Made by a program: the position numbers and the translations under genes. A stretch of 63,614 bases of DNA, counting the filler, from Klebsormidium nitens (taxonomy: Eukaryota > Plantae > Klebsormidiophyceae), in the NCBI GenBank assembly GCA_000708835.1. It is 6 parts of 6 records of this genome, joined end to end, with 100 filler letters (N's around TTAATTAATTAA, not from the genome) between each part and the next. Parts side by side here need not be neighbours in the genome. Positions count along the whole stretch, not along the records: positions 8,815 to 31,016 come from DF237898.1; 5 more parts are not named here. One strand, written 5' to 3'. The notes below the pieces were generated by a model, which was not told where the DNA came from, made no database searches, and worked only from the letters and a program-made list of their open reading frames with translations. Shown here one piece after another: positions 8,815 to 30,890 of the stretch. Numbering within the stretch: position 1 is the stretch's first letter; each line of letters starts with the position of its first letter.

Positions 8815-10460
8815 ATGCTGCAATTCGATCAGTCCAGAGCTGCAGGAATTCTCTTACCTGCTCGGTCCCTGTCGATATGAAAACAACCCTTTGTTGGGCC
8901 GTGCAGCTCGCAGTAGTACCGGATGTTGCCTCCATTTTTGCTTCCCCGGAGCCCCCATTCTGCTGTCAGGTCGCACTCATGGCAAACGATCGCATGTGGG
9001 TCTGGAAAAGAGATAAAGGCAAACCTGGGAATCAAGGCCGCTCACACGTGATACAAAGACCGGCCATGCCATCAACTTCAGAAACTTTACAATGAGTGAC
9101 CTATTGATACCAAGTAAAGAAGCGGCCAGCACTTGGTTGACTTTCCTGCCATGCCATCAACTTCTGGCACTGAACCAGGAAATGGCCCATTGATTTCTCA
9201 AGAAACAAACGGCCATTTCTTGGTACACTTCCTACTTCAACTTCTTGCGCCCTTCTCATGTTTCAAGGCACGCCCAGCCACGACTACAACTTCTGGCTTT
9301 GTACCAGGAAATGATCCTTCGGAGTCTCTGACTTTGAAAAATAACGGGTCAGAATCTGGTACACTTATGCGCACGGCCAGCTATTCTGCTGGTCGACGTT
9401 GATGATTGTTCATCAACCTAATGTTCTAAATAAAAAGAAGCAAACTCACCACGTTCCGCAGCGCAATCCACAGCTTCTCTGAGCGCTCGCGCGTCCTGCC
9501 ACTTGGCTTTCCGATCCGCAGCGCTGCAGCGCGCGCATGCTGGAACCTCTCGAGCCGGCTTCCCCGCATGCTTTAATCCCTTCGACCTTTGACANNNNNN
9601 NNNNNNNNNNNNNNATGCTGCAATGAGAAAAGGGCACGATCAGTCCAGAGCTGCAGGAGCTGCAGCCATGCCAAGTCCTGCGTGATCCAAGGTCAACCTT
9701 GCCTCCTCTTGCACACAAGCGGGGTGTGTGCGTCTTCTCTTACCTGCTCGGTCCCTGTCGATATGGAAACAACCCTTTGTTGGGCCGTGCAGCTCGCAGT
9801 AGTACCGGATGTTGCCTCCATTTTTGCTTCCCCTGAGCCCCCATTCTGCTGTCAGGTCGCACTCATGGCAAACGATCGCATGTGGGTCTGGAAAAGAGAT
9901 AAAGGCAAATCTGGGAATCAAGGCCGCTCACACGTGCCATGCCATCAACTTCAGAAACTCTACAAAGAGTGACCTATTGATACCAAGTAAAGAAGCGGCC
10001 AGCACTTGGTTGACTTTCCTGCCATGCCATCGACTTCTGGCACTGAACCAGGAAATGGCCCATTGATATCTCAAGAAACAAACGGCCATTTCTTGGTACA
10101 CTTCAACTTCTTGCGCCCTTCTCATGTTTCAAGGCACGCCCAGCCACGACTACAACTTCTGGCTTTGTACCAGGAAATGATCCTTCAGAGTCTCTGACTT
10201 TGAAAAATAACGGGTCAGAATCTGGTACACTTATGCGCACGGCCAGCCATTCTGCTGGTCGATGTTGATGAAAGATCATCAACCCAATGTTCTAAATAAA
10301 AAGAAGCAAACTCACCACGTTCCGCAGCGCAATTCACAGCTTCTCTGAGCGCTCGCGCGTCCTGCCACTTGGCTTTCTGATCCGCAGCGCGGCAGCGTTT
10401 GCATGCTGGAACCTCTCGAGCCGGCTTCCCCGCATGCTTTAATCCCTTCGACCTTTGACA
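8815..10460 (-). repeat. Tandem duplication (8815-9594 and 9615-10460) of a degenerate minus-strand gene segment with Cys/His motifs
   Basis: Near-identical copies with substitutions and indels; both encode VCHECDLTAEWGLRGSKNGGNIRYYCELHGPTKGCFHIDR. Confidence 0.85.
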
Positions 10461-14811: not shown

Positions 14812-17800
14812 CTATTAGATGGATTTGAAGATGGCGGAATCCAGGAGGTGGTGTTGGAGCAGGTTGAGTGCGGTTGGGACATGCCCGCGGACGCAACGCG
14901 GCTGCTTCGGCGCAGAACTCAAAATCTGGCAGCCCACTGGGCCCCAGCGGAGCATCAAGCCAGCTTCTCGACCAGCACAGGATCCAGGTGAGGAAAGCAG
15001 GGCAAAGAAAGCAAAGTATAGGAGGGGGACAAGGTTTATAGAGTTGGTGGGAAGATACAGAGTTAAGGAAAAGGGAAGAAAATTACACTCAGTCAGATGG
15101 TAAGACTTCATATGAAGAGGTTTCGGCAAGTCCTGCTTGATCGCAACTAATTCTTGTTGACGTTGTAAACCGCGGCATGTGGGAGGCTGACCGTATACAG
15201 CGTTCATTCCTGCTCATCCTCCCTCCAGAGATTGCAAAGCACAGGATGGACTGGTTGCAGTCCTTGTCCCTTGAATGCTCCTCAGCATCAGCCACATCAA
15301 ACACTCTTGACAGATGGCTGGCCAGCGGCAGTCTGGCCCGCCTGATTAATTGGATGACAAAATGGGTATGGGTGCGTGTATTGCCATAGAAAGCTTTCAA
15401 TGCAGGCTCGGTTGTGGTTCGCGGCTGCGATGCGCAATTCATCCCATCCCCATTCAGCATTCTTTCAACCTGTTCTTCGGACTCATGTCCTGTCCTCTTG
15501 TTCTTCCCAGGCGCCAAACGCAGCATAGCACAGCGGGTCAGGCTCGTGGGAAAAGACATATCAGTGGGCGCGAGCAGGTTAGTGAGGCTGACACCGACTC
15601 TTACATATGCTTCATTCAAGCGACTTATCGTCGGGTTCAAGGCTTGGCACCTTCCAAGGTCAAACTGCAGTGAGTTTGATTTCCCAGATTGCCCAGCTTT
15701 CGTGCGCCTCAGAAGGAGACATGATGAATTGCTCCCCGGGCTCAAAGATTCCCTTGATGTGGCCACAAGACGCCGTCTGGTAGGAACATTTTCAAGAACT
15801 GGTTGATTTCTGCTGCGGCGATAGGCGAGTCCCAGAAATGTTCCACACGGAGAACCCTCCTTAATCCAGCTTTTCCTTAAGTCAGTTCGCTCATGCTATC
15901 GAGCCTTGGGCGGCTTGGCCGCTGTGCTCATGCCAATGGGATGACATTGACCAGGTTCACGTGGCCGCTCAAAACAGCGCACCCTTTACTTTGGACAATC
16001 ATACGCTTTTCAACTTTTTTCACGTCCCACAGGTCGACTCCAAACGACTGGGATCCGACGAGCCTGCACATATTTGTGGAGAGCCGCGCGTGGCGAGTGC
16101 AGCCGGGATAATAGCGGCCGCTACACGAGAGTACGACCACGATGTGCACATCGCGCAAATACTTAGGTGAGGAGTACTTCTGCACAAGTCGTGACGTCTT
16201 CAATATCTGGGCGTGTCATCGAGTCTTCCTTCCAATGCTTCCAAGAGTACTCAGAGATACAAGAGTGTCGCTGCTGCGCGCCTCACGCCCAGAATGAGGA
16301 TCATCTCGCTTCTGTGTGTATTGGGACTTGGGTCTTTGGGGCTTTTATTACGTATTTCTTTAAGGTGCGGGAGGGCACAGAAACAGCTGTACATTTATGC
16401 ACCTCGAGCTGAAATTTAGAGCAAGGATTTGGTTGGATCTTAGGGGTTTTCCTGGTTTCGTTCGGTGTTTTTGGGCTCATTCTTCTATGCCGGATATTAT
16501 CTATGCCGGATATTAGGAGCAGCTGGACAAGGACAACAACTTTGCGCAGCTCGAGCGGATATTCGGCGTGAGGGTCATGCTGGCTGTCGGATGTCGCCAA
16601 TTGAATCTACCAGCGCTCTTTCTAATCTCTTTGTCCATGCAGTGTCGTAGAAATGACCTGTAGGCGTCTCGCTCGCTCTCGTCATTCGTCCTTCCAACCT
16701 TACAGCTTCAAGCGCCTTCCGACAACAGACCACGACCGTGTCCGGCCCTTCCGGCTGCTACTATGGAATTTAACACTCGCCTGTCACCCATGTCTATCCT
16801 CTCTGATCTTTCCTCCTAAAATTGTCAGGCTTTGCTGCAGATGACATGAAGGAGCACCACCCCCGGCGTTTATGGCGCGTTCCGGCTGCGGCTGACTGAG
16901 TTGCGGCTGGAGAGGGAGTGCCACGTGGCACTCCAAGAGGAGCGTCAGGGCGTCCCCAAGCTGGCGGGCTCGCACACGAAGAGTGACGTCACAGTCCGGG
17001 GCCACCTGTCGGCCGTTGAGACTACCTCCCTAAACAGAAGTCGCGGGCTCCACAGGCGCTGAGGAATCCTTCGAGAAGATGAAAGGGTTGCGGAGTCAAA
17101 TCCCGACACATGGCGGGGCCTGTGCTCGGGAAAGAGCTTCGGCCGCTGGATTCGAGGATTGGTCGGAGGCTCAAAGCCACCGCAGCGCAAGAGCGCGACC
17201 GAGAGGGGCGGCGAGACATGGGGGGGGCGCGGGCGAAGGCCGCGAGAAGGGCGCCGGAGAGCAGCGAGATGCGCGCGCGTGCGCCCGGACTGCAAACCGG
17301 GGCGCGAGCGAGACATGGGCGAACGTGGACGCACGACCGGAAGCAGAGACGGGCGCGGGAACGCCTCAAGCGGACGACATCAGTCGGAAGATGGCGTGCA
17401 CGGCTTGCACGTGGGAAACGCGCTGGCGAAACTACACGAGGTGGGCTCCGCTTCCTGGTCGCCGCTTGTTAGCCCCCAGTTTCAGCAACTTTCTCTACCT
17501 TCTGCACCCGGTCCTGATTGTTCTCGAACGTTCTATCTTCGCGGGAGGTTCCCGTCGTCATTTAAAACGCTTCAATATTACAAAACCGCAATTCTCGAAC
17601 ACGACAACACGAGCCTGTGTAGGACGACGCGGTCAACACCACTATCCCACCGCGCCTCCTACGAACAAAAGGCTTTGCAACTCTTGTACGCTGTGCGTTT
17701 GTCGCGTTCACACCCGTTCACCAGAAAGAAACGAAGTCCGGTTGAGCTAGAGGAGTGGTGGGTCAAGCTGGGCTTGCAGACTGTGACGCCAGCAGGGGTA

Positions 17801-18444
17801 CGAACACTCGGGCAAGCTGTGAAGTAGGACATGGAGTCCGCCCCCGGATTGCTGGCAATGGCGACCCGGTTCATGCCACTGCTCAAATTCTCCCTAAAAG
17901 TGTGCAGATTCTGACGTCAGCAAAGTCCGACTGTTCCGTTCCGTTGTGACGTTAGCCGACAGTGTTCCGTTCCGGTAGTGAGGGACGACTTGGAGTCTGC
18001 GCAGGGGCTGCTGGCGATGGCAAAGAGGGTGAAGTTTAATCTAGGAAAGATGTGACGTCAAGTAAGCTTCGCATTTTCAGACTGGACGTCAGCAGAACTT
18101 TGATTATCTTTCAGGTTGTGAAGGACGACTTGGAAGCCCGCGCCGGGGCTGCTGGCGTTGGCAAAGAGGGTGAAGTTTTACGTTAAGGTGACGTCAGAAA
18201 AGCTTCGCATTTCCAAATTGAGACGTCAGCAGACTTTCGTTATCCTTTTAGGTTGTGAAAGATGACACGGAGTCCGCGCCAGGCTGCCGGGTTCATGCTG
18301 CGGAAGCAGTCGCCACAGACAAAAACAGTCTGAAGCGCATCCAGCAGATTGGGCTACTCTGCGGAGAACCGCGACGAACTAGAGCGGGGCTGGCTCAGGC
18401 CAGCTGACGTGTCCATCCGCGAGGGGAAGCACGACGCGGCGCAG
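14812..18444 (+). CDS. Unassigned multi-exon hypothetical gene or pseudogene (one or more)
   Basis: Several short AG..GT-bounded protein-like segments, e.g. EIAKHRMDWLQSLSLEC..LINWMTKW, EQLDKDNNFAQLERIFG, SEDGVHGLHVGNALAKLHE, LGYSAENRDELERGWLRP; full model not resolved. Confidence 0.3.
17816..18297 (+). repeat. About four tandem 137-140 bp units containing micro-exon-like DDLESAxGLLA(M/L)AKR segments and TGACGTCA motifs
   Basis: Units begin at about 17816, 17975, 18115 and 18252. Confidence 0.8.
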
Positions 18445-18541: not shown

Positions 18542-18605
18542 GGTGGCACGTTTAGAATGGATACTGCGCTGCTGGTGGCACGTTTAGAATGGATACTGCG
18601 CTGCT
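18542..18605. repeat. Perfect 32-bp direct tandem duplication
   Basis: ggtggcacgtttagaatggatactgcgctgct x2. Confidence 0.95.
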
Positions 18606-19859
18606 GGCGCATACTTTGACTGCTTTTTGGTTTGCTGTGCTTTTCCCTTGTCTTAATCGATCTGACACCCCATTAACAGGGGAAACGCTCTTCAGAGGGC
18701 GTAGTTCAATTGACTCATGACCACAGACCCAAGTAAAGAGAATCTTCGGACGACGGTGCCTGCCCTGCTGTACACGGACCCCGTTCTGGAATTTGATCCA
18801 TCTTTGTGAAGAGCCGAGCTCTGTGGTCAACCGCTTGGAAGGTGGTTTCTTTGAACCCTGAGGTTTAGAGCTTGGCCCAATATTCTGCAGTAATTTTGGA
18901 GCTCGATCTTGGAATAAACAAACTGCATCTTCCTTTCGCAATCTACCACGTCACTTCAGCACTCCTAACATGTAGCCTAAAGCTGCACCCAAACTTTGAA
19001 GAAAGACCCATTCTTGATTCTCGGCGACTCGACTTGTATCCATAATATGGACTCGCTTTGCCCTCTTCAACTACTAAGATCTGGTAAGCTCTTAACTTCG
19101 CGCTTTCACTGAACGACAGCATCAGATTCTTCAGAGTTTCTTCTCTCCATGTTGAAGTCTTTCCTCTGAGTATTCGTACTACTCTGTAACCTTCAATGAA
19201 GTTATATTCGATTGTGGGTATTAAACGTCTTGGTCGTTTCTCTACAGGACGGAAATTCAGGACGTGCTCGACAATTTTTCAGCATCGCGAGGTGTTACGT
19301 AGGTTGTACGTGCCACAGGGCCGCGGCCGCGCTCTGCCTCAAAAGGCTGTAGAAAAGAAAAACGTGAGGACTACAGTACTTTTGTTTCGAAATACCGTCC
19401 GCATAGCACGAAACTAGTAGTTTGTATAATGGTTCTTTCGAGCTGCACCTTGTCACGGTTTGCGTTCAAAAGAAGGTTTTTATACTCAGGCTTCTTCCAT
19501 CCAGCTTGCCGCTGACAGTGATCATGAGCAACGATGCTTTTCTCCTGCAAACAAAGACTAAGCGGCTGGATGACGGGCCGCCAAGCTGACTCAACATTGA
19601 GAATCTCGCTCAAGCATTGTGTCATTCTTCAATCACTTCCGTGCCGATCTTGGATCCGTAAGCCTGCGTACGTGGAAGAGCATGCAGAATGCTTCTTGTC
19701 CGATCTCGTTCGAAGTCTGCACTATGCTGTGGAAGTTCCGCGCTTCTCGAATCCTGCCCCTTCCCTCGATGTTCCAAGGATATTACTCTATTACGTCGTT
19801 CCTTGCTCAAAAGCGACCAATGTTTGCGGCCAGCTCTTAAGTACCAGTTGACCAGGATG

Positions 19860-21113: not shown

Positions 21114-24100
21114 ATGGTGGCGAAGTCGTCCCTGATTGGCCTCTTCGGCCTACTCTGCCTTGTTCTGCATAGTGCGAAGGTAAGTGAATGTCGAGCAGGT
21201 TGTCCTAGTTTTTCCCAAGGCTTTGAAAAAGGGGACTTACTTCTGACGCTTGTGTTCTTTGCTTCTAGCTTTGGCTTTCTTATGTGACCCAGATGCTCTC
21301 CGATTTGCGTTCTTGTCTAGTTGTGTGTATAACGACTTCCAGCCAGTGACTCAAGTATGATAGTTGGCAGTTGAGTAAGTGATCATCAGTTTGTCTAGAC
21401 GCGTCAAAACTGCTGTATGTGTTGGCAGGATACACAGAATTCCCACATGGGCCACCCAAAATATCTATCTCTTATTGCGCTGCCTGTCGCTGCCTTTCAA
21501 AGCGCGGGTGTTCTTAAGAATCAAAGTTCTTGACATTTGAAACTAGCTCTTTTCAAAAGGTGGGCTGTATGGCACCACTTGCCGAAACGTCGAAGCTGGG
21601 AATGGTATCATTTCATGCAGTATGAAGCAGCCGATTCGGCCGTCGATGTCGAAGATTGAGTGCTTTTCGTGTCTGCCTCTGCTTTCTGCACGAAACGCAA
21701 TAAGGAAGCACTGACGTTTGCCCATCCATATTCAGGTTTTTGCAGTCGCTTTGAAGGAGGACTCCGGTTCCGTCGTGTTGGTGACGGAACCCCGGTTCCG
21801 CGGCGAAAGTATCGCGGTTGCCCACCGAAAGCTGATGCAGACTGCGTCACCTGCAACGCAGGCGCCAGGTGGGTGCAAAACACAAAATCATGGACTCGGA
21901 TAAGCGACTGTCTTCAAGGGTTATCAAGAAACCTTCAAAATTAAGTAATCCGACAAAGGACTTTGAATGATCTAATCTCCAAAGTAAGGAAGACAGACTC
22001 GGGGCTCTGAGAGGGATGTTCAGCTATCTGAACCCAATCCGACTCTTAGAACTGGCCAATGAAGTCTCGTTCGTGTTCTAGAATGTGGTTCTTGGTCCAA
22101 AGACCGAAGCTCGAAAGCACGTACGTCTCGAGCCGAAAGTTATTATATCAAGCGCAAATCTGATTTTTTCAATTTCGGTCTCAGAATTTTTTCGGTCTAA
22201 CTTGAAGCAAAGTCTCTGAGTCCGGATGCTGACTTCGAGTTCCTCGCGCTTATTTCCGGTTCAACATTGTAACGGCAGGTGCGGTTGCGTCCATGTGCGC
22301 ACCTACCGACCGGTCCTTGAACCCGCTGACCCGCGTCTACTGTTCCTACAACGTGACGATCGGCGGGGCCCCCGTTAAGACATTGACGGTCTGCACGTAC
22401 AATGCAACCGGTGCTCTCCTCGCGGTTCCCGCGGCCACTATCTCTGGAGGGGCTCCACGGATACCCCCGTTTTCCTGCCCAGGTGAGAATGGGCGCCGTT
22501 CCTCATACAAACGAGTCTCAGAACTCGTTTTGGCCTGTTGTAAATGCTCCCCGACCGGCTTCATTACACTTTGCTAGAAGAACAAGCTAGAGGTGCTACA
22601 GCGAGGCGGAAGTAGGGGAACTCGGCTTTTAAAGGAGTACAGAACGTTCAAAAGTTGTCCAGAAGCCCATTCATTGAAGTAGAACGGAGAAAGTTTGTGA
22701 ACATCTAAGACACTTCGCAATGAACGTTAGATCCTTTCAGTTCATCCAGAAATTGCAAAAACCTCCATCAATCTTTTCACGAAATCAAGTATTGCTATAT
22801 GAATCGGAGGCTATTGAGACTCTAAAGGGCTAGCTTACAGAACTTGAACATACAGAGGGATTCTGCATGACGCTGTGGCCCTAATCAGTCTTTGCAGTGC
22901 CACTTGTAGCAGAGATGCAAGTACTCAAGGTTCGTTTGCTTCTTCGATGACATTCTTATGGTGATCATCCATGGGCTGTTAGATCTTCCTACTTTTCTAG
23001 ACAACGTTGAATCCATATCACTAGCAATTGCAAGTAATCTGCTTCTGTATTGGAAAATCCATGGCCAGTGAAAAGTGCAAAAGTCGGATTTGTTTCTGGC
23101 TTACTGGCAGGCAATGTCGTCCCCAACTCTTGCCCCGCGTCGATTCAGCGGAACTTTGCAAACGCGAGCATTTTCTACCAGCAATATCTTTGCGTGTACG
23201 CTGTCAACGCATCAACCGCAGCTTCAACATTGTGTGGTTACGTCGCAACTGGCGCATCAAACGGGATGACCCCCCCCAACTGTCCAAGTGAGCGGCTATT
23301 TGCGAGCACCAGATCAAGTTGCGGCCCTGCAAGTTGTGTGAGCTACCAAGCACGGCCATTTTTGGCCACGAGGGAGCACAGCAAGATCGAAAAATGAATT
23401 GGTTAAGGCTACTCCGTACTTTGGCGTGGCTTCGTAGGATATCCGTTATCAGATTGATTCCAAAAATGGTTTTGAAATCCGGGCTCTTCGCTTTCAACAA
23501 AGACTGATGCAGGCCGATCGAATACAAAACACGTAGCCGTCGTTTCTGCTCAAGCCCGGTTATCCCACTCTATATGGCTGAGCTTATCCAATCTATTCCC
23601 GATAAATGAGTCGATTGAAGCCGAGCCCCGTACTGCTTCAGCTTACATAAAGAACTGGGTCCAGTGCCCATACCTCAAAAAGAACGAGAAAACGTTTGCG
23701 TAGCTCTTGCTAAAAAACTTAAGGATCTATTAGCTAGGTGCACCTTTTCCTTCATCAAGCAAACGTCATTTATATCTTTTCTGCAGGTGCTCCGACGCCC
23801 ATATGCCCTGTCATAAATGTAACCTCGAACCCGTTGACGCGATTGGCATGTCTGTACGGGGTCCAACAGAGTGTCCCAAGCGTTAGAACTGTGTACGCGG
23901 ATTGTTTCTACAATACAACCGGTGCCCTCCAGCCGCTGGTGTCGCGAGTAGATGATCCGAATATTGTCTCCTGCCCGGGTGAGCTGTAACGACTCGAACA
24001 CATTCCTTTTCATTTTTCGGGATGGATTCGGCTCTTTAGAGATGGGAAGTTAAGGCAAAGAAACGCGATATGCGATCACTGACTGCGAGGCTCTCCAACC

Positions 24101-27100
24101 TTGAATTGCGAATCCGTTTTTTTTGGGTCAAGTTGAAATGCGGCTTTCAAATTTGAACGCGTTCTTTTGGGGCCCGGTTCAGCTCTAGCAATACGCCTTC
24201 GATTTGCCAAGTTGTAGTCGATACCTATCACCCTTGCGTATGGCAGCGCTATTTTTGAACGATGAAAGTTATTTGGGGCTAGCAATACTTTCCCTAGAGT
24301 AAGTTTTTCGATTGCATCTACCTTTAGATTTATGAATTCCAAAGACGTCTTAGGCAGATTGAAGCACCAAGCAACGACCGGGTCGGACCCACTGACGAGC
24401 TTTATATATATCCAAAACAAAAGTTAAGGTTGCAACGTTGACGATCACCTTAATGCGTATATGACTTCACGATGACTGGCACGTACGTACTGGTCCCAAC
24501 GCACCAAGGAACACTCTCGAGAGTCTCCTGGCACTGTTCACTCAAGAATTTCAACCGAAGTAGTGCGCCTTTGTGCTCCCTAAAATCTTCCAGGCCATTC
24601 ATTTCCCCTTGATGTCCTTAATCTGGGCGCGACAGCAAATGGTTGCATACAGTTAAATAACCATCAATTATGCGTGTTCTCTGTGCTTCATCATTGTAGG
24701 AAGTACACCCGTCCTCAGTTCGTGCCCTCGCGTGGAGTCGGTTAATGGATTTTCTCTTGCCGTGTCATTCTTCAACTTTATTTGCCTTTACAATACTCCT
24801 GCCTTGGCGGCCGGGTTGGGCCCTCAGAATGAAGGAAGTTGCACGAGCCAGGTGGCGCATTGCTCAGCGGCGGCTGGAACATCCAGTGTCCTGGTGGGTC
24901 CCGCACCTCTCCTCGCAAAGACAAACCATAACACCATAATGTTGACCCAAGTATGAGTCGCTATATAAGCGCCGTGTCAAGTCGGATGCACATGAGTAAA
25001 ATATGGGGCCAGCCCAACTGGCAAATTGAATGTCAATACAGGTCTGCACGCTTAAGTTTGAGACTGCTTCAGAGCCTGATTGTTTCCCTCCTCTTGCCCT
25101 GCAATTGCAATCAGAGGCTGTTTGTATAAAGAAATCTCTCGAATCCAAAAACATTCGATGGATCAACGTTGCTTAACGGGGCCGCAGTTTCTCGTCCCTC
25201 ACAAATGTACATTTGTAACTTTACGCAGCTAAACTCCTTGTGCCCCCAACGCCTGCTTTGACGCCTGCTCCGACGCCACAGCCACCCGTGCCACGTAAGT
25301 TGCACAAGTTCCAATGGTCAGCTTTTCGATAGACGCTCTGCTATTCTGGTCTTCTGGGCTCCATCTTTTGATGTTAAGCGCCAAAAGAATGGACCACCGA
25401 ACGGTTGGTGTTCGCAATTGCAACCCCAGCTTGTTGGGGCTCCCGCTCTAGCGGGCAAAGCTGTCACGAGTGCACCACCGCATGAGTTGCATTCGGTCTC
25501 GGGTGAATAATTTCAAGTGTGCCCTCACTTCTTGGTAAACGGGCCAGGCCGAAAAAATGTAGATCTCTTTAGAACAGCGCTCGAGACTCGGACGAGTCGG
25601 TAACTTTGCCGGTAGAGAGGAACGATTCGAAATAGCAATCTGGATCTTAGACATGTATGTTACTGGATGTTTGGAGAGAGTTAGCTTGTCTTTAGAAGAT
25701 ATCAGGTGTTAATAGATTTATTCAAAGCCATGCCTAGTACGAATAACCTCGACAACTTCGCGTTTCTTGTTCTGCTTCTTCAACGCCAAAATTGGGCGTG
25801 CTTGGTAGCTTGCTTACACAACTTGGGCCGCAACTTGAAGTCACTTGATACTCGCAATCACGGATGTAGGGCCGACCGGTTACAAGAAACCGTAACCGTC
25901 GTTTTTGCTCCGCCCATATTTAGATTTATCGCATTCTAGGGCTGAAGTCACCCAACTTACTTCCACAGAAAGGAGTTGGTTGAATTCGAGTCCCTCGTAC
26001 CCTTTAAGCTTATCTAGAGACTCAAATCCAGACCCGGTACCTTGACAAGAATGAGAGAGCGTTTGCGTAGTACTTGCTAAACAGCCCAAGGATCTATTGA
26101 GTGCAACCTTTCAGACGGTCAAGCACGTCCTTTATTTTCTTTTTTGCAGGTGCAGTAACGCCCACATGCCCCACCATAGATTCGAACCCATTGACGCGAT
26201 TGGCGTGTTTGTACTCCGTCCAGCAGAGTGTTCCGCCCTTTACAGCTATGCTTGCGTCCTGTTTCTACAACACGACCGGTGACTGGCTCCTCCCGTTGGA
26301 GCCAGTGGATACTCCGAATATCTGCCCAAGTGAGCTGTAACATCCAAGGTCCGAAGGTCCTGTTTTTCCACTTTTCAAATTGTTCGAAGGGCTTTTCAGA
26401 AAACGGGAAGAAAAGGCAAAGAAAAGCGTTATTGGTTTTGTGACCGCGTGGCTCTCCACAAGGGATCTTTGCATGCGGTTATTTTGGAATCACGGCTTCT
26501 GAAAATAAACGCTGTCCTTTTAAACTTCGTGCAATATGCATTCGGTTCGCAAGCGGGACTAGGGCAGCGCTATTAACCATTTGAGGCAACCGTTGCACCG
26601 GAGTGGGTTGCCGAATTGCACGATCTACCTTCAGATCTCTGGACTCCAAAGACGTCAAACATTGAAGCACCGAACAACGACCCAAATGAGCGAGATGTTA
26701 AAAAAGGGTTGTAAGGTTTTACCTCTCTGACATAGTATCTTCATGCAAATTTGGCTTCACGATGACGGGCATGTAAATACAATCGTTCAGAACCAACGCA
26801 TCAAGAAACAATTTCAAGCGGGAGTCTCTTGTTGCCACCGTTCGCTCAGATCCCACCGATTGATTGTTGTGCCGCTGTCTCCCTACAATTGACCAGGCAA
26901 ACGAACTCCCATCGACGTCCTTTGGGCGCCCCAGCAAATTATCCTGTTCTAAATTGTACCTCCTCGTTTGTAGGTAGCACAACGGTCCCCAACCCGTGCC
27001 CTGGCGTGGTGTCGCTTGGTCTTCCCCTTGCCGTGTCAGTCAGCAGCTTCAAGTGCCTTTACACTACTCCTGCCGTGGTGGCCGGTTCCCTCAAGGAGGA

Positions 27101-27158
27101 AGTTGCACGTACGCGCCAAGTGGCGGATTGCTCGGCAGCTTCAATGTCCGATGTCCTA
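21114..27158 (+). CDS. Secreted modular Cys-rich repeat protein. Exons 21114-21179 (signal peptide), 21736-21868 (HRKLMQ pro-region), 22279-22482, 23111-23287, 23787-23978, 24700-24893 (frameshifted), 25229-25294 (Pro/Thr linker), 26150-26329, 26974-27158 (frameshifted); 3' end unresolved
   Basis: GT-AG boundaries; exon 1 to 2 is phase 0 and the intact downstream exons are phase 1-1 (204, 177, 192, 66, 180 nt); six homologous CP..CxY..CxY..G..CP domains; N-terminus MVAKSSLIGLFGLLCLVLHSAKVFA. Confidence 0.8.
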
Positions 27159-28619
27159 GTGAGTCCCGCACCTATCCTTGCATTAGAAAACCATGCGTTT
27201 TCCCATCGGTTTAGTTTTCCTTGGGGACAAAACAAATTAGCTGATATGATATTGCGGTGCAAGATAAGCACGCGATTTTCACTTGCTGACGGTTTATACC
27301 AATATTGCTACATAACATAGTCAATTCAGTCTTTGTCTCGTTCTGTTAATGGTCTCGACAAGCGAGTCCGCGCCACCAACTCGACGGTTGGAAGGGCATG
27401 TAGTGCGTATGAGCCGCTAATTCGGTGTCCCGTGTAATAGATTCGTTCGGCGAGCCCTGAGTCGAACCTCACCCTTCGAATGGGACTTGACTTGAACGGG
27501 AGCATTTTGCACAGCTGCATCTGTAAGCGGCACACTTTGACCAGCCACATGTGCCACCGTATTTACGGCCAATGAAGCGGTGTTCGTTCGAACCCACTTG
27601 CAGGGAATTGTGACTTTCTCATTGCAGGTCGACAACAGCCCCTACGCCACAGAAGGAAGGTTGCCCTGAATCTGATTCAATCCTTTGTTTCGATTTCCTG
27701 ATCAAGACCCGCTGTCGTGCTGATCATTACCTTGTTGGACTCGTGCAGCCCCCTCGCCTTCGCCGACCTCTGGTAGGTTTCCGTTCCTCCCCAATCTTGA
27801 CCGCCTAGCCGGATCCCATCTTAAACGACCAAAACATGAGCCAGTTTTTGAATTGACGAGTACTTCCGTTGATCAAATCTTAGGTTGCATCTCGTACAGT
27901 GATTGATGATATCGGATTGGACAGATTGAGCACTGCGCTTTCCCAGGTGTACAAGACACAAGTTTCCCGTTGGGTACGTAAATCTGCTCACCAAACCGGT
28001 CGATCAGGTGGGACGCAATATCAGTTCATCCGAATGCCAGGATGCACTGGGACCCTCGGGACCACGTTATTCATTCTCTTTCGTTGGCGTTCATGTCCGT
28101 CCTTAACTCTAACACTCGACATGTGCAGGCGTTTGATCCAGGAGACAGGGTAACAAGAAGCCGTTCCGCGCCAGGCTTTGGCCAGGATTCTGTAGATCGA
28201 GTTCGCGTTTGTAGGCTGTGAAATAGGGGGCGGGCAGAATCTACCTCGAGACAAAACAAGATTTCATCTTCTGCTGCCAGTTTAGAGACCACCGCCATGG
28301 CTTCAGAGTTCTTTTGACGGACCAGTAGTCCGTGCAGTTGCCTACGGCAGATATATATAGCACTGGACACCTTCAAAAACCTGCATAAAGTGCAGTGAAT
28401 GTCTTGAATCTCATGAGTACATCAACCGCGCCGCCGATGATCTTCTCGAGGGATAAAAGACTTGGAGTGTTAATCTAAGGTCCCTCTACGAACGATCCTT
28501 AACGCTTCTAAACGCAAAATACCTCGTCCGATCATGAAAATACTGTTTGTACGAAATTACATACACTGCATGGCTAATGAGTCATGACTGTGCAGCCAAG
28601 GCGACCATTCAATTAATGA

Positions 28620-30890
28620 CGTACGGCCAGGAATTGCTTGTACAGCTGGCGGCCGCCCAGTTCTTTTCGTGTGACGCTCAAATCCAGAAGCCTAGGATTG
28701 CGGGTGTCGCGTCGGTTTGGCAGCGCATTGAACGGGGCACAGGCGAGAGACTGGAGTTTCATGATCAGGAAGCTGGCAAAGCGAGCAAGCAACGAGTCGT
28801 TCATGTCAAGGAGGAGGGGTTGCGGGGTTGAATCCTTCCGACTTCTTCACTCCGGCTTTTAAAACGGTCGGATCAGGGGAGGGGCCGGCCCTTGGCACCT
28901 GCTGCTTGAAGAAATTCAGACGACGGTTTCGGAAGGCAGGAAAGGTTTGACATGTTCTGGAGCTCCCCAATCTGTCAGTATCGTGCGCCAGAATTTCAGG
29001 TACTTATCTCCAGGCAGTTGACTTCATACGGAGATTTGAAGCCTAAAGTGCCGGTGTGACACTTGAGAAGTGATTGTGGACTAGAGTCTTGCTCGACGGA
29101 AAGAACGAACCGGAAGGATCGGACGGATCATATCTAGCCGGAACCACAGAGCGGGGCTATTGTGGTCGTAAAGTTGAGGTGCCATGCAAATGGGCTCCCT
29201 GAGAGGCGCCTCTCGCTATCGAAGACAGCCGCTCAATTGCAGGTAATAAATTGACTCAAAAGACTGCAGATCCTGACTTCTGAAAGGAAGCCAGAATTGC
29301 TCTCAACGTGGGCGATTCTGAGAGGTCGCCGTTGATTCCACTGCTGAACGGCGTATCGGAATGTGCCGTCGAATTCAACGAACCGACCTCTTCGGGACAA
29401 GCCGGTTCTTCTGGTTGCGCCTCAGGCCGGATTGGGCGCCTCAGTACAATGCGTAGCGGTACAAACCTTCCAAACACCAGAAAGCCACAGCAGTTTCCTC
29501 ACTTTTGAAGTACAGGCGGTTGTTGTATTTTGGAAGACGGTCAGGTCGCCTCAGGGGACTACGAACGCGGGTTCCGCCGGTTCGTTAAGATGCTTATTCA
29601 CGTAGCTGCTTGTGCAGCAAGAAGGGTTGGCCAGTTTTCAGAGGCCGAAAGGTAGAAAGTGGCACGTACCAATCCTACGCGCAGAGCTGGCCGACCGCTG
29701 CAGGGGTTCTTTGCGACCGTATAGGCGCTGCGCGCGAGCGGGCTCCACCGGCAGTGATAGCCCGAGCATTATGCACCTAGTGCTGTGGACGGAGTTCCTG
29801 AAATGCAGTGGTTGGCGCGCGCGGGGCCGCGCGCAAATAGCAAGACCGCGGCGGCACCACTGCAGAAGCCGTGGCCTGCCTGCGGCGCGCGCCTCTGCGA
29901 AGTTTTGGGTTTTTGGTCTGAGAGACGATGGCGGCCGCCGAGCTGCCCACCGGCTCCGATCGGCTGCGGCAATCATACTTCAGCCGACGGACCGAAGAAG
30001 GTGACAGCGGGAAGACGTCAGCCGATTAGCTAGCAGCCGATGAATTGTGTTGAACGCGGCTCGGCGCCGGCCACGTTGCTGCAACGCTCGGCTGATCAGG
30101 CTGGAAAAAGGCGGAGTAGCGGAGAAGCTAGTACAGGGGAACTTGTAACGTTATCAGAAAACATGTTTCTGTGGAGGGGCATGAGGCAGTCAGTTTGGAA
30201 ATGGAGGATTAATGCAGCCATTCTTACGGGCCGGGGTGCGGGTGCATGGGAAAGCGCATTCCGAACCGTTCGCTCTGTAGATGCCGGACCCCATGTGGTC
30301 AGCAAGTGACTAGAAGCTGACCATGAGTTCGACAGCGCGGCGTGACTGCTGAGCGCGCGCGCGAGCACGCTCACGAGGTGGTCTCCGCGCCGCCAGCGCA
30401 AGGTCGCGCGCCTCGTGCGCGCTCTAAACCAGCAGACAGCGCCTCACGGCGACCGTGCTGCGCGAGGTAGCCCCGGCCGTATCAGAGAGTCTCGCGCAGC
30501 TACGCGCAGTCGGGCAACCTTTTCTCGGTACGTCGCGAGCTCTAAGTTCGCTGGACCTGACGTCCATATCCGCACCAGAACAGCATATGGTCGGGCGATT
30601 AATATCGATTGATGGCGTCACTTTGAATGCCCACAAGTTTGTTGCGTCGAGGCCTTCTAAGGTATTACGAACTTGTAAGATCTTCTAGACGAGGCAATTG
30701 GCGGCGCAGGTGGCCTCGCTTGATTTTCATTGGAGTCTGCCCGCGGCGCGGCGCGGCGCGAACCGCGTAGTGGTGGAACTCGATCCGAAGTGGCGAAGAC
30801 CGCAAAAGAAACCACGGAATCACGTGTACTTCGAACGAGAATGGTTGCAAGAGCCTGAAAAGCCGTTTAAAATTTTTCGAAGACTGTGAT
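28620..30890 (+). pseudogene. Possible decayed multi-exon gene fragments
   Basis: Exon-like pieces such as VASGDYERGFRRFVKMLIHVAACAARRVGQFSEAE (about 29546-29652) and RVVVELDPKWRRPQKKPRNHVYFEREW; no family recognised. Confidence 0.2.

Follow-up and report, generated by a model that had tools for sequence, protein, structure and literature searches.

What kind of protein is encoded by a run of small, look-alike exons in the genome of Klebsormidium nitens, a land-dwelling filamentous charophyte (streptophyte) green alga? The exons lie on scaffold DF237898.1, 22.2 kilobases (kb) long, which forms part of the window, that is, the whole stretch of 63,614 nucleotides (nt) that was analyzed and along which all positions below are counted. 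An initial annotation had seen in them a secreted protein built from six homologous four-Cys modules, each on its own symmetric phase-1 exon, and had assigned it to no named family. We found that the locus is a real K. nitens gene, KFL_009490050, belonging to a lineage-restricted and unnamed family: eight exon translations occur letter for letter, and in order, in its product GAQ92222.1 ("hypothetical protein," 392 residues; labeled P0001 in our profile search). The gene was already known to GenBank under that description, and part of the locus is broken. Gene structure, family, duplication, and frame breaks are all directly observed and are set out in turn. The reading that joins them, to which we assign a probability of about 60%, is that KFL_009490050 encodes a lineage-restricted secreted and glycosylated wall or matrix protein, and that it is a block-duplicated gene at a partly decayed locus.

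All exons lie on the + strand. Exon E1 (21114–21179; 66 nt, 22 codons, phase 0-0) contains the start codon (ATG at 21114) and the signal peptide and corresponds to residues 1–22 of GAQ92222.1. The N terminus is hydrophobic, with a Kyte-Doolittle 11-residue mean of up to 2.9, and its core occupies residues 5–18, with small residues after it; the core sequence, LIGLFGLLCLVL, is kept in the paralogues described below. Exon E2 (21736–21868; 133 nt, phase 0 to 1) encodes the pro-region, with a conserved ..RFRGE..AVAHRKLMQT.. motif. The signal peptide and pro-region of the initial annotation were thus borne out by the hydrophobic N terminus of E1, by E2, and by the exact match to GAQ92222.1.

Four clean module exons follow: E3 (type A1; 22279–22482; 204 nt), E4 (type B1; 23111–23287; 177 nt), E5 (type A2, in copy 1 of a duplicated block; 23787–23978; 192 nt), and E8 (type A2, in copy 2 of that block; 26150–26329; 180 nt). 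Each begins in phase 1 after AG, contains exactly four Cys, and closes in phase 1 on its Cys-Pro codons (TGC CCx) and one further nucleotide before gt; E3, E4, and E5 hold two sequons each, and E8 holds one. Exon L7 (25229–25294; 66 nt), which the public model leaves out, encodes a Pro/Thr linker (..PPTPALTPAPTPQPPVP). The lengths of E3, E4, E5, E8, and L7 are all divisible by 3, all five exons are phase 1-1, and the junction codons (GGT, GGC, AGT, and GGT) specify Gly or Ser. For the four clean exons, the earlier description of a secreted-type protein with disulfide-type modules, one per symmetric phase-1 exon, is supported, and the peptide strings quoted with it, the TPAPTPQPP linker exon, and the NVT, NAT, NAS, and NTT sequons are all present. 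The count of six homologous modules, each closing on Cys-Pro just before GT, held for these four only, because E6 and E9, the fourth and sixth modules, are frame-broken and had been read as intact only through a silent change of frame. The homology itself is graded: E5 and E8 share 61% identity (E 3e-17), E6 and E9 share 52%, E3 shares 42% with E5 or E8 (E about 1e-4), and E4 is akin to the other modules at the profile level only.

A profile of the four clean modules was searched against 1.84 billion representative proteins and gave nine matches. Seven are K. nitens "hypothetical proteins" (E 6.7e-93 to 8e-9, with two to four matched stretches each), and the other two, P0006 and P0009, were set aside because they are tandem repeats of low complexity and unrelated. 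When the family profile was run as a word-index search over 5.8 billion proteins, it recovered the same K. nitens proteins and no others, and none of 600 pattern matches to a single-module query among Joint Genome Institute (JGI) metagenome contigs was confirmed as a relative. The earlier suggestion of a lineage-specific protein is upheld by the module-profile searches. KFL_009490050 has six paralogues (KFL_000100020, KFL_009970010, KFL_000580190, KFL_014180010, KFL_000100010, and KFL_003530030), all deposited as hypothetical protein, with identities of 35–74%, which share its signal peptide, its pro-region, both module types, and its linkers. A literature search with the family locus tags found no paper that mentions them. 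Pfam searches of every exon and of all seven family proteins gave nothing above noise, and a PDB sequence profile search gave noise only (E > 0.5). With a low-confidence AlphaFold2 model of one module, the best Foldseek match in the PDB had an E of 0.77 and is not credible; the ESM Atlas yielded no usable match by features and, by structure, template modeling scores (TM-scores) below 0.5. Consistent with the initial annotation, therefore, none of the Pfam, PDB sequence, Foldseek, or ESM Atlas searches gave a credible match to a named family.

The family has a recurrent architecture. Its signal peptide follows the pattern M.AKSSLIGLFGLLCLVL.. and, in four members, its pro-region follows ..EDSGSVVP.TE.RFRGETTAVAHRKLMQT..; AHRKLMQT is found in four paralogues and AHRQLLQ in P0008, and P0002 has diverged. 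Type A modules follow C.P.D..NPLTRVYCSYNVT....LTVCTYNATGAL....SCP and type B modules GST.PNSCPASVQ.NF....FYQQ..C.YA......LC.Y.ATGA.....NCP. The two types alternate along the family proteins and are homologous to each other (hhalign probability 92%, E 6e-7, over a C-x-Y...C-x-Y-N-A-T-G-A core). Subtype A1/B1 comprises E3, E4, and most paralogues, and subtype A2/B2 comprises E5, E8, E6, E9, P0008, and the second A of P0003. Whereas P0002 and P0004 are clean A-B-A-B arrays with 16 mature Cys, the array of KFL_009490050 runs A1, B1, A2, broken B2, linker, A2, broken B2. Linkers such as GGPSTPAPTPALTPAPTP, near-identical to L7, follow B modules in P0004 and P0005, as L7 follows the B2 exon E6, and L7 is therefore a genuine family element. 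The combined Pro, Ala, Ser, and Thr (PAST) content of the family proteins is 34–51%, and no family member has a hydrophobic C terminus. As a separate observation, the B1 module of P0003 (KFL_000580190) is cut to its first Cys, leaving 9 mature Cys, Trp replaces the first Cys of one A module in P0005, and P0005 and P0007 are partial models; the family may commonly contain broken modules or be represented by imperfect gene models.

Growth by exon duplication, which the initial annotation had also raised, is visible in KFL_009490050 as an intragenic block duplication that includes introns. Positions 23503–24929 and 25860–27194 on the + strand form a tandem duplication (23503–27194) with a period of ~2.36 kb and 67–74% identity over exons and introns together; taken separately, exons of the two copies are 72–80% and introns 67–68% identical. 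E10 (27628–27669; phase 0, 13 codons and a stop), the last coding exon of the public model, lies at the expected linker position of copy 2 and shares ACGCCACAG (..PTPQ..) with L7 in a frame that the public model does not use. The duplicated unit therefore consists of an A2 exon, a B2 exon, and a linker exon. Shuffling of the exon into unrelated genes was not seen, and the module is confined to its own small family. Beside these results we note that E10, in the frame unused by the public model, has no stop over the 48 codons that precede a GT (27628–27772; gtaggt) and is linker-like (..TTAPTPQKEGCPESD..); this frame could be a relic of the gene's original continuation. Just outside the left edge of each block copy lies one arm of a 73-nt inverted match (23314–23386 against 25838–25765; 78%), perhaps a small mobile element or a trace left by the duplication.

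The B2 exons of the two copies are E6 (24700–24893; 194 nt; not in the public model) and E9 (26974–27158; 185 nt), and both lengths leave a remainder of 2 on division by 3. In both exons the N-terminal half (CP..CLY) lies in the frame set by the acceptor and the C-terminal half (SCTY..GxLL..CP, then gt) in another, with the final Cys-Pro codons off the head frame. A 12-mer encoding GSCT is common to the two exons and follows the head frame in E6 (24834) but not in E9 (27098); because of this difference, the break can be placed after ..GSCT in E6 (~24846–24850) and before ..GGSCTY in E9 (~27086–27097). At the breaks the copies differ by about 7 nt and 4 nt. A type B hidden Markov model (HMM), built from paralogue B modules with E6 and E9 left out, matched E9 over positions 1–38 in one frame (E 8e-6) and 39–58 in the other (E 0.03), and matched E6 over positions 5–34 (E 3e-5) and weakly over 44–58, with the frame split as in E9. 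Among intact relatives, the B2 module of P0008 comes closest, with 61% identity to the E6 head and 49% to the E9 head, and its four Cys all lie in a single frame. Two splicing solutions were considered and rejected: an acceptor 4 nt downstream, in E6 and likewise in E9, does not restore the module frame, and a 16-nt GT..AG stretch within E6 falls short of intron length.

The public model leaves out both E6 and L7 and keeps the head frame of E9 throughout, which gives that exon three Cys and runs into the phase-0 E10 with a stop after 13 codons. Inclusion of E6 puts L7 in phase 0, with a stop after 10 codons. If E6 alone is skipped, L7 stays in frame, because all the neighboring exons are phase 1-1. 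The ratio of nonsynonymous to synonymous substitution rates (dN/dS) is 0.37 for E5/E8 versus 0.93 for the E6/E9 heads, each estimated from few sites; the former indicates constraint, that is, purifying selection after the duplication, and the latter looks neutral.

We propose that the KFL_009490050 protein begins with a cleavable signal peptide and a ~45-residue pro-region ending in the conserved R-K-L-M, which by its resemblance to motifs of pro-pectin methylesterases would be a subtilase (S1P-type) processing site. The mature protein would be a chain of ~60-residue modules, each with four Cys that probably form two disulfides, with two C-x-Y motifs on a beta hairpin in the models, which are of low confidence, and with a Y-N-x-T-G sequon after the third Cys that is a candidate for N-glycosylation. 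A and B modules alternate and, in the paralogues, are followed by (Thr/Ala)-Pro linkers that appear to be of the arabinogalactan-glycomodule type and could be O-glycosylated on hydroxyproline. In the gene structure, each module and each linker is one class 1-1 exon, with its Gly/Ser junction codon placed just past the last Cys-Pro. Tandem duplication of the three-exon block (A2, B2, and linker), together with its introns, enlarged the gene, and on our reading different frameshifting deletions later struck the two B2 exons. Because the B2 exons are frameshifted, a full-length product would have to skip E6, and the out-of-frame second half of E9 would leave a short new C terminus. Once secreted and freed of its pro-region, the product would be a soluble, disulfide-stapled, N- and O-glycosylated component of the cell wall or extracellular matrix, possibly serving adhesion or forming a protective matrix in this filamentous terrestrial alga.

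Several points weigh against this proposal. The wall or matrix function is one that we only infer. AlphaFold2 models are of low confidence, with a predicted local distance difference test (pLDDT) score of 55.7 for one module (4 alignment rows) and of 34 for the 392-residue public protein (7 rows); in both, the two C-x-Y segments are modeled as strands. The RKLM motif is absent from P0002, and O-glycosylation is suggested by a linker exon that the public model of KFL_009490050 omits. The Cys count of the mature public product is odd, at 19, of which E9 contributes only three, and the usage of exons E6, L7, and E9 rests on the public gene prediction. Moreover, the locus may be turning into a pseudogene.

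Carried further, this last point becomes an alternative in its own right, in which KFL_009490050 is a decaying gene or pseudogene within a real family, the 392-residue model merely reflects how a gene finder got around two broken exons, and the locus yields no functional protein. The independent frameshifts in two of the six module exons, the dN/dS of about 0.9 for the E6/E9 heads, the odd Cys count of the mature product, the premature stop in L7 on inclusion of E6, and an exon identity between block copies that barely exceeds the intron identity would all be expected of such a gene. However, no damage is seen in the start codon, the signal peptide, the pro-region, four of the modules, or any splice site, the E5/E8 ratio points to purifying selection since the duplication, and the frame survives the skipping of E6 because its neighbors are all phase 1-1; we consider a dead gene unlikely on balance. 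The same frameshifts could instead be errors of a draft assembly, the true gene having six intact class 1-1 modules, as in the initial annotation, and linkers. The scaffold is indeed a short draft piece with an N gap, and a small change of length would make E6 and E9 complete B2 modules like that of P0008. Yet the differences, of 4 nt and 7 nt, are not in homopolymers, fall at two sites in two copies, and are unlike typical sequencing errors, whereas the neutral-looking dN/dS of E6/E9 fits real decay, so that this explanation strikes us as very improbable.

A different kind of alternative concerns function. The family proteins might be precursors of defense or signaling molecules, with a pre-pro region that directs processing and variable Cys-stapled modules that act as antimicrobial or recognition units. 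Signal peptide and R-K-L-M pro-region are kept in close members while module number and order vary, and the small size of the family, its restriction to one species, and its truncated and broken members are typical of secreted families with fast turnover. Over all members, however, conservation of the pro-region does not exceed that of the modules (mean identity 45% versus 52–54%), the modules are large and predicted to be glycosylated, the arabinogalactan protein (AGP)-like linkers are a better fit to matrix glycoproteins, and Pfam searches found no similarity to known antimicrobial families. We regard a precursor of this kind as rather improbable and retain the wall or matrix protein as the preferred reading. 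Beyond it, we advance a broader idea that we would expect to fail more often than to hold: the A/B unit may be an autonomously folding extracellular domain of undescribed fold, invented in the Klebsormidium lineage and carried as a class 1-1 exon module. It would then be an independent, non-animal case of an exon module, its copy number and order changed by exon-block duplication and perhaps by frame-preserving skipping of cassettes (E6 and L7).

With regard to the DNA around the gene, the piece has ~50% G+C, contains no long open reading frames (ORFs), has GT-AG introns of 335–855 nt, and gave no matches in Rfam and tRNA scans; it is on these grounds nuclear DNA of an intron-rich eukaryote. 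Pfam searches of 78 flanking ORFs of at least 75 codons found nothing above noise. Near the start of the scaffold, 8817–9092 and 9616–9969 encode + strand peptides that are 88% identical, with an N gap between them, and are probably duplicated sequence or an artefact of gap assembly. Upstream of the gene lie three tandem repeats, at 16484–16515 (a perfect 16-nt unit in two copies), 17970–18287 (a 136-nt unit in 2.3 copies, 80% matches), and 18542–18607 (a perfect 32-nt unit in two copies). Islands of higher G+C (58–61% versus a background of ~49%) occupy 16800–17800 and 29300–30800 and hold no ORF that Pfam recognizes.

How does this design compare with known systems? The pro-region recalls that of group-2 pectin methylesterases (PMEs) and RALF peptides, which are processed by S1P and other subtilases: in each case a basic R-(R/K)-L-(L/M/K)-type motif ends the N-terminal pro-region of a secreted protein of the wall, which for the algal protein is its proposed location. 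RKLL, RRLL, and RKLK motifs of plant pro-PMEs are cleaved by subtilases (bioRxiv 10.1101/2022.07.28.501549), and at the pro-region boundary of the algal family, HRKLMQ in four members and HRQLLQ in P0008 match R-x-x-L or R-(R/K)-L-x. Unlike group-2 PMEs, the algal protein has neither a PME-inhibitor-like pro-domain nor a PME domain. The mature part resembles the chimeric AGPs and hydroxyproline-rich glycoproteins (HRGPs), such as fasciclin-like AGPs and the volvocine pherophorins, in having a signal peptide, Cys-containing globular domains between (Thr/Ala/Ser)-Pro linkers, a PAST content in the range given above, and no membrane anchor beyond possible glycan links. Ala-Pro, Ser-Pro, and Thr-Pro repeats constitute the AGP glycomodule (PMC7389152); stretches of this kind are present in L7, P0004, and P0005. 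The algal family differs from the chimeric proteins in that its module is unrelated, by Pfam searches, to fasciclin, pherophorin, plastocyanin-like, and nsLTP domains, its linkers are short, it has no glycosylphosphatidylinositol (GPI) signal, and in KFL_009490050 the linker exon is outside the public model. If the protein is indeed a component of the wall or matrix, it may be relevant to how a terrestrial alga adheres and withstands desiccation.

In gene design, the parallel is with the class 1-1 modules of metazoans, of the Sushi/CCP (PF00084) and EGF types. Shared with these are a length of ~60 residues with four Cys and a Cys-Pro start, a symmetric phase-1 exon for every module, a junction codon for Gly or Ser, an arrangement in tandem within a secreted protein, growth by exon duplication, and probably a beta-rich fold. 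Membership of the Sushi/CCP family was nevertheless rejected, because its defining Trp and a Pfam match are both absent. The algal module alignments contain no conserved Trp, whereas Sushi has an invariant one between Cys3 and Cys4; the algal C-x-Y motif follows Cys2 and Cys3, unlike the Y/F-x-C of Sushi at Cys2; and Pfam gave no match with the E cutoff set at 10 for single modules and at 1 for whole proteins. Sushi modules fold as a beta-sandwich with disulfides 1-3 and 2-4, and the algal models are of too low confidence for a comparison at this level. The resemblance is one of design only. In contrast to the metazoan modules, the algal module occurs in no other protein context, has been duplicated only within its gene and family, and has a streptophyte host.

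According to Patthy's review (PMC8001218), every shuffled module belongs to class 1-1, most such modules are extracellular and rich in beta structure, junctions favor Gly, and exon shuffling appears restricted to Metazoa, a restriction for which the review asks the reason. The class 1-1 modules of secreted mosaic proteins have been treated as a hallmark of animal evolution. Because the algal domain has no relatives outside one species, its young and small family offers a chance to follow the birth, multiplication, and decay of an extracellular module. Overall, a streptophyte alga near the origin of land plants has the same design as the animal mosaic proteins, with disulfide-module exons that are symmetric in phase 1, Gly/Ser junctions, and an intragenic block duplication that can be dated.

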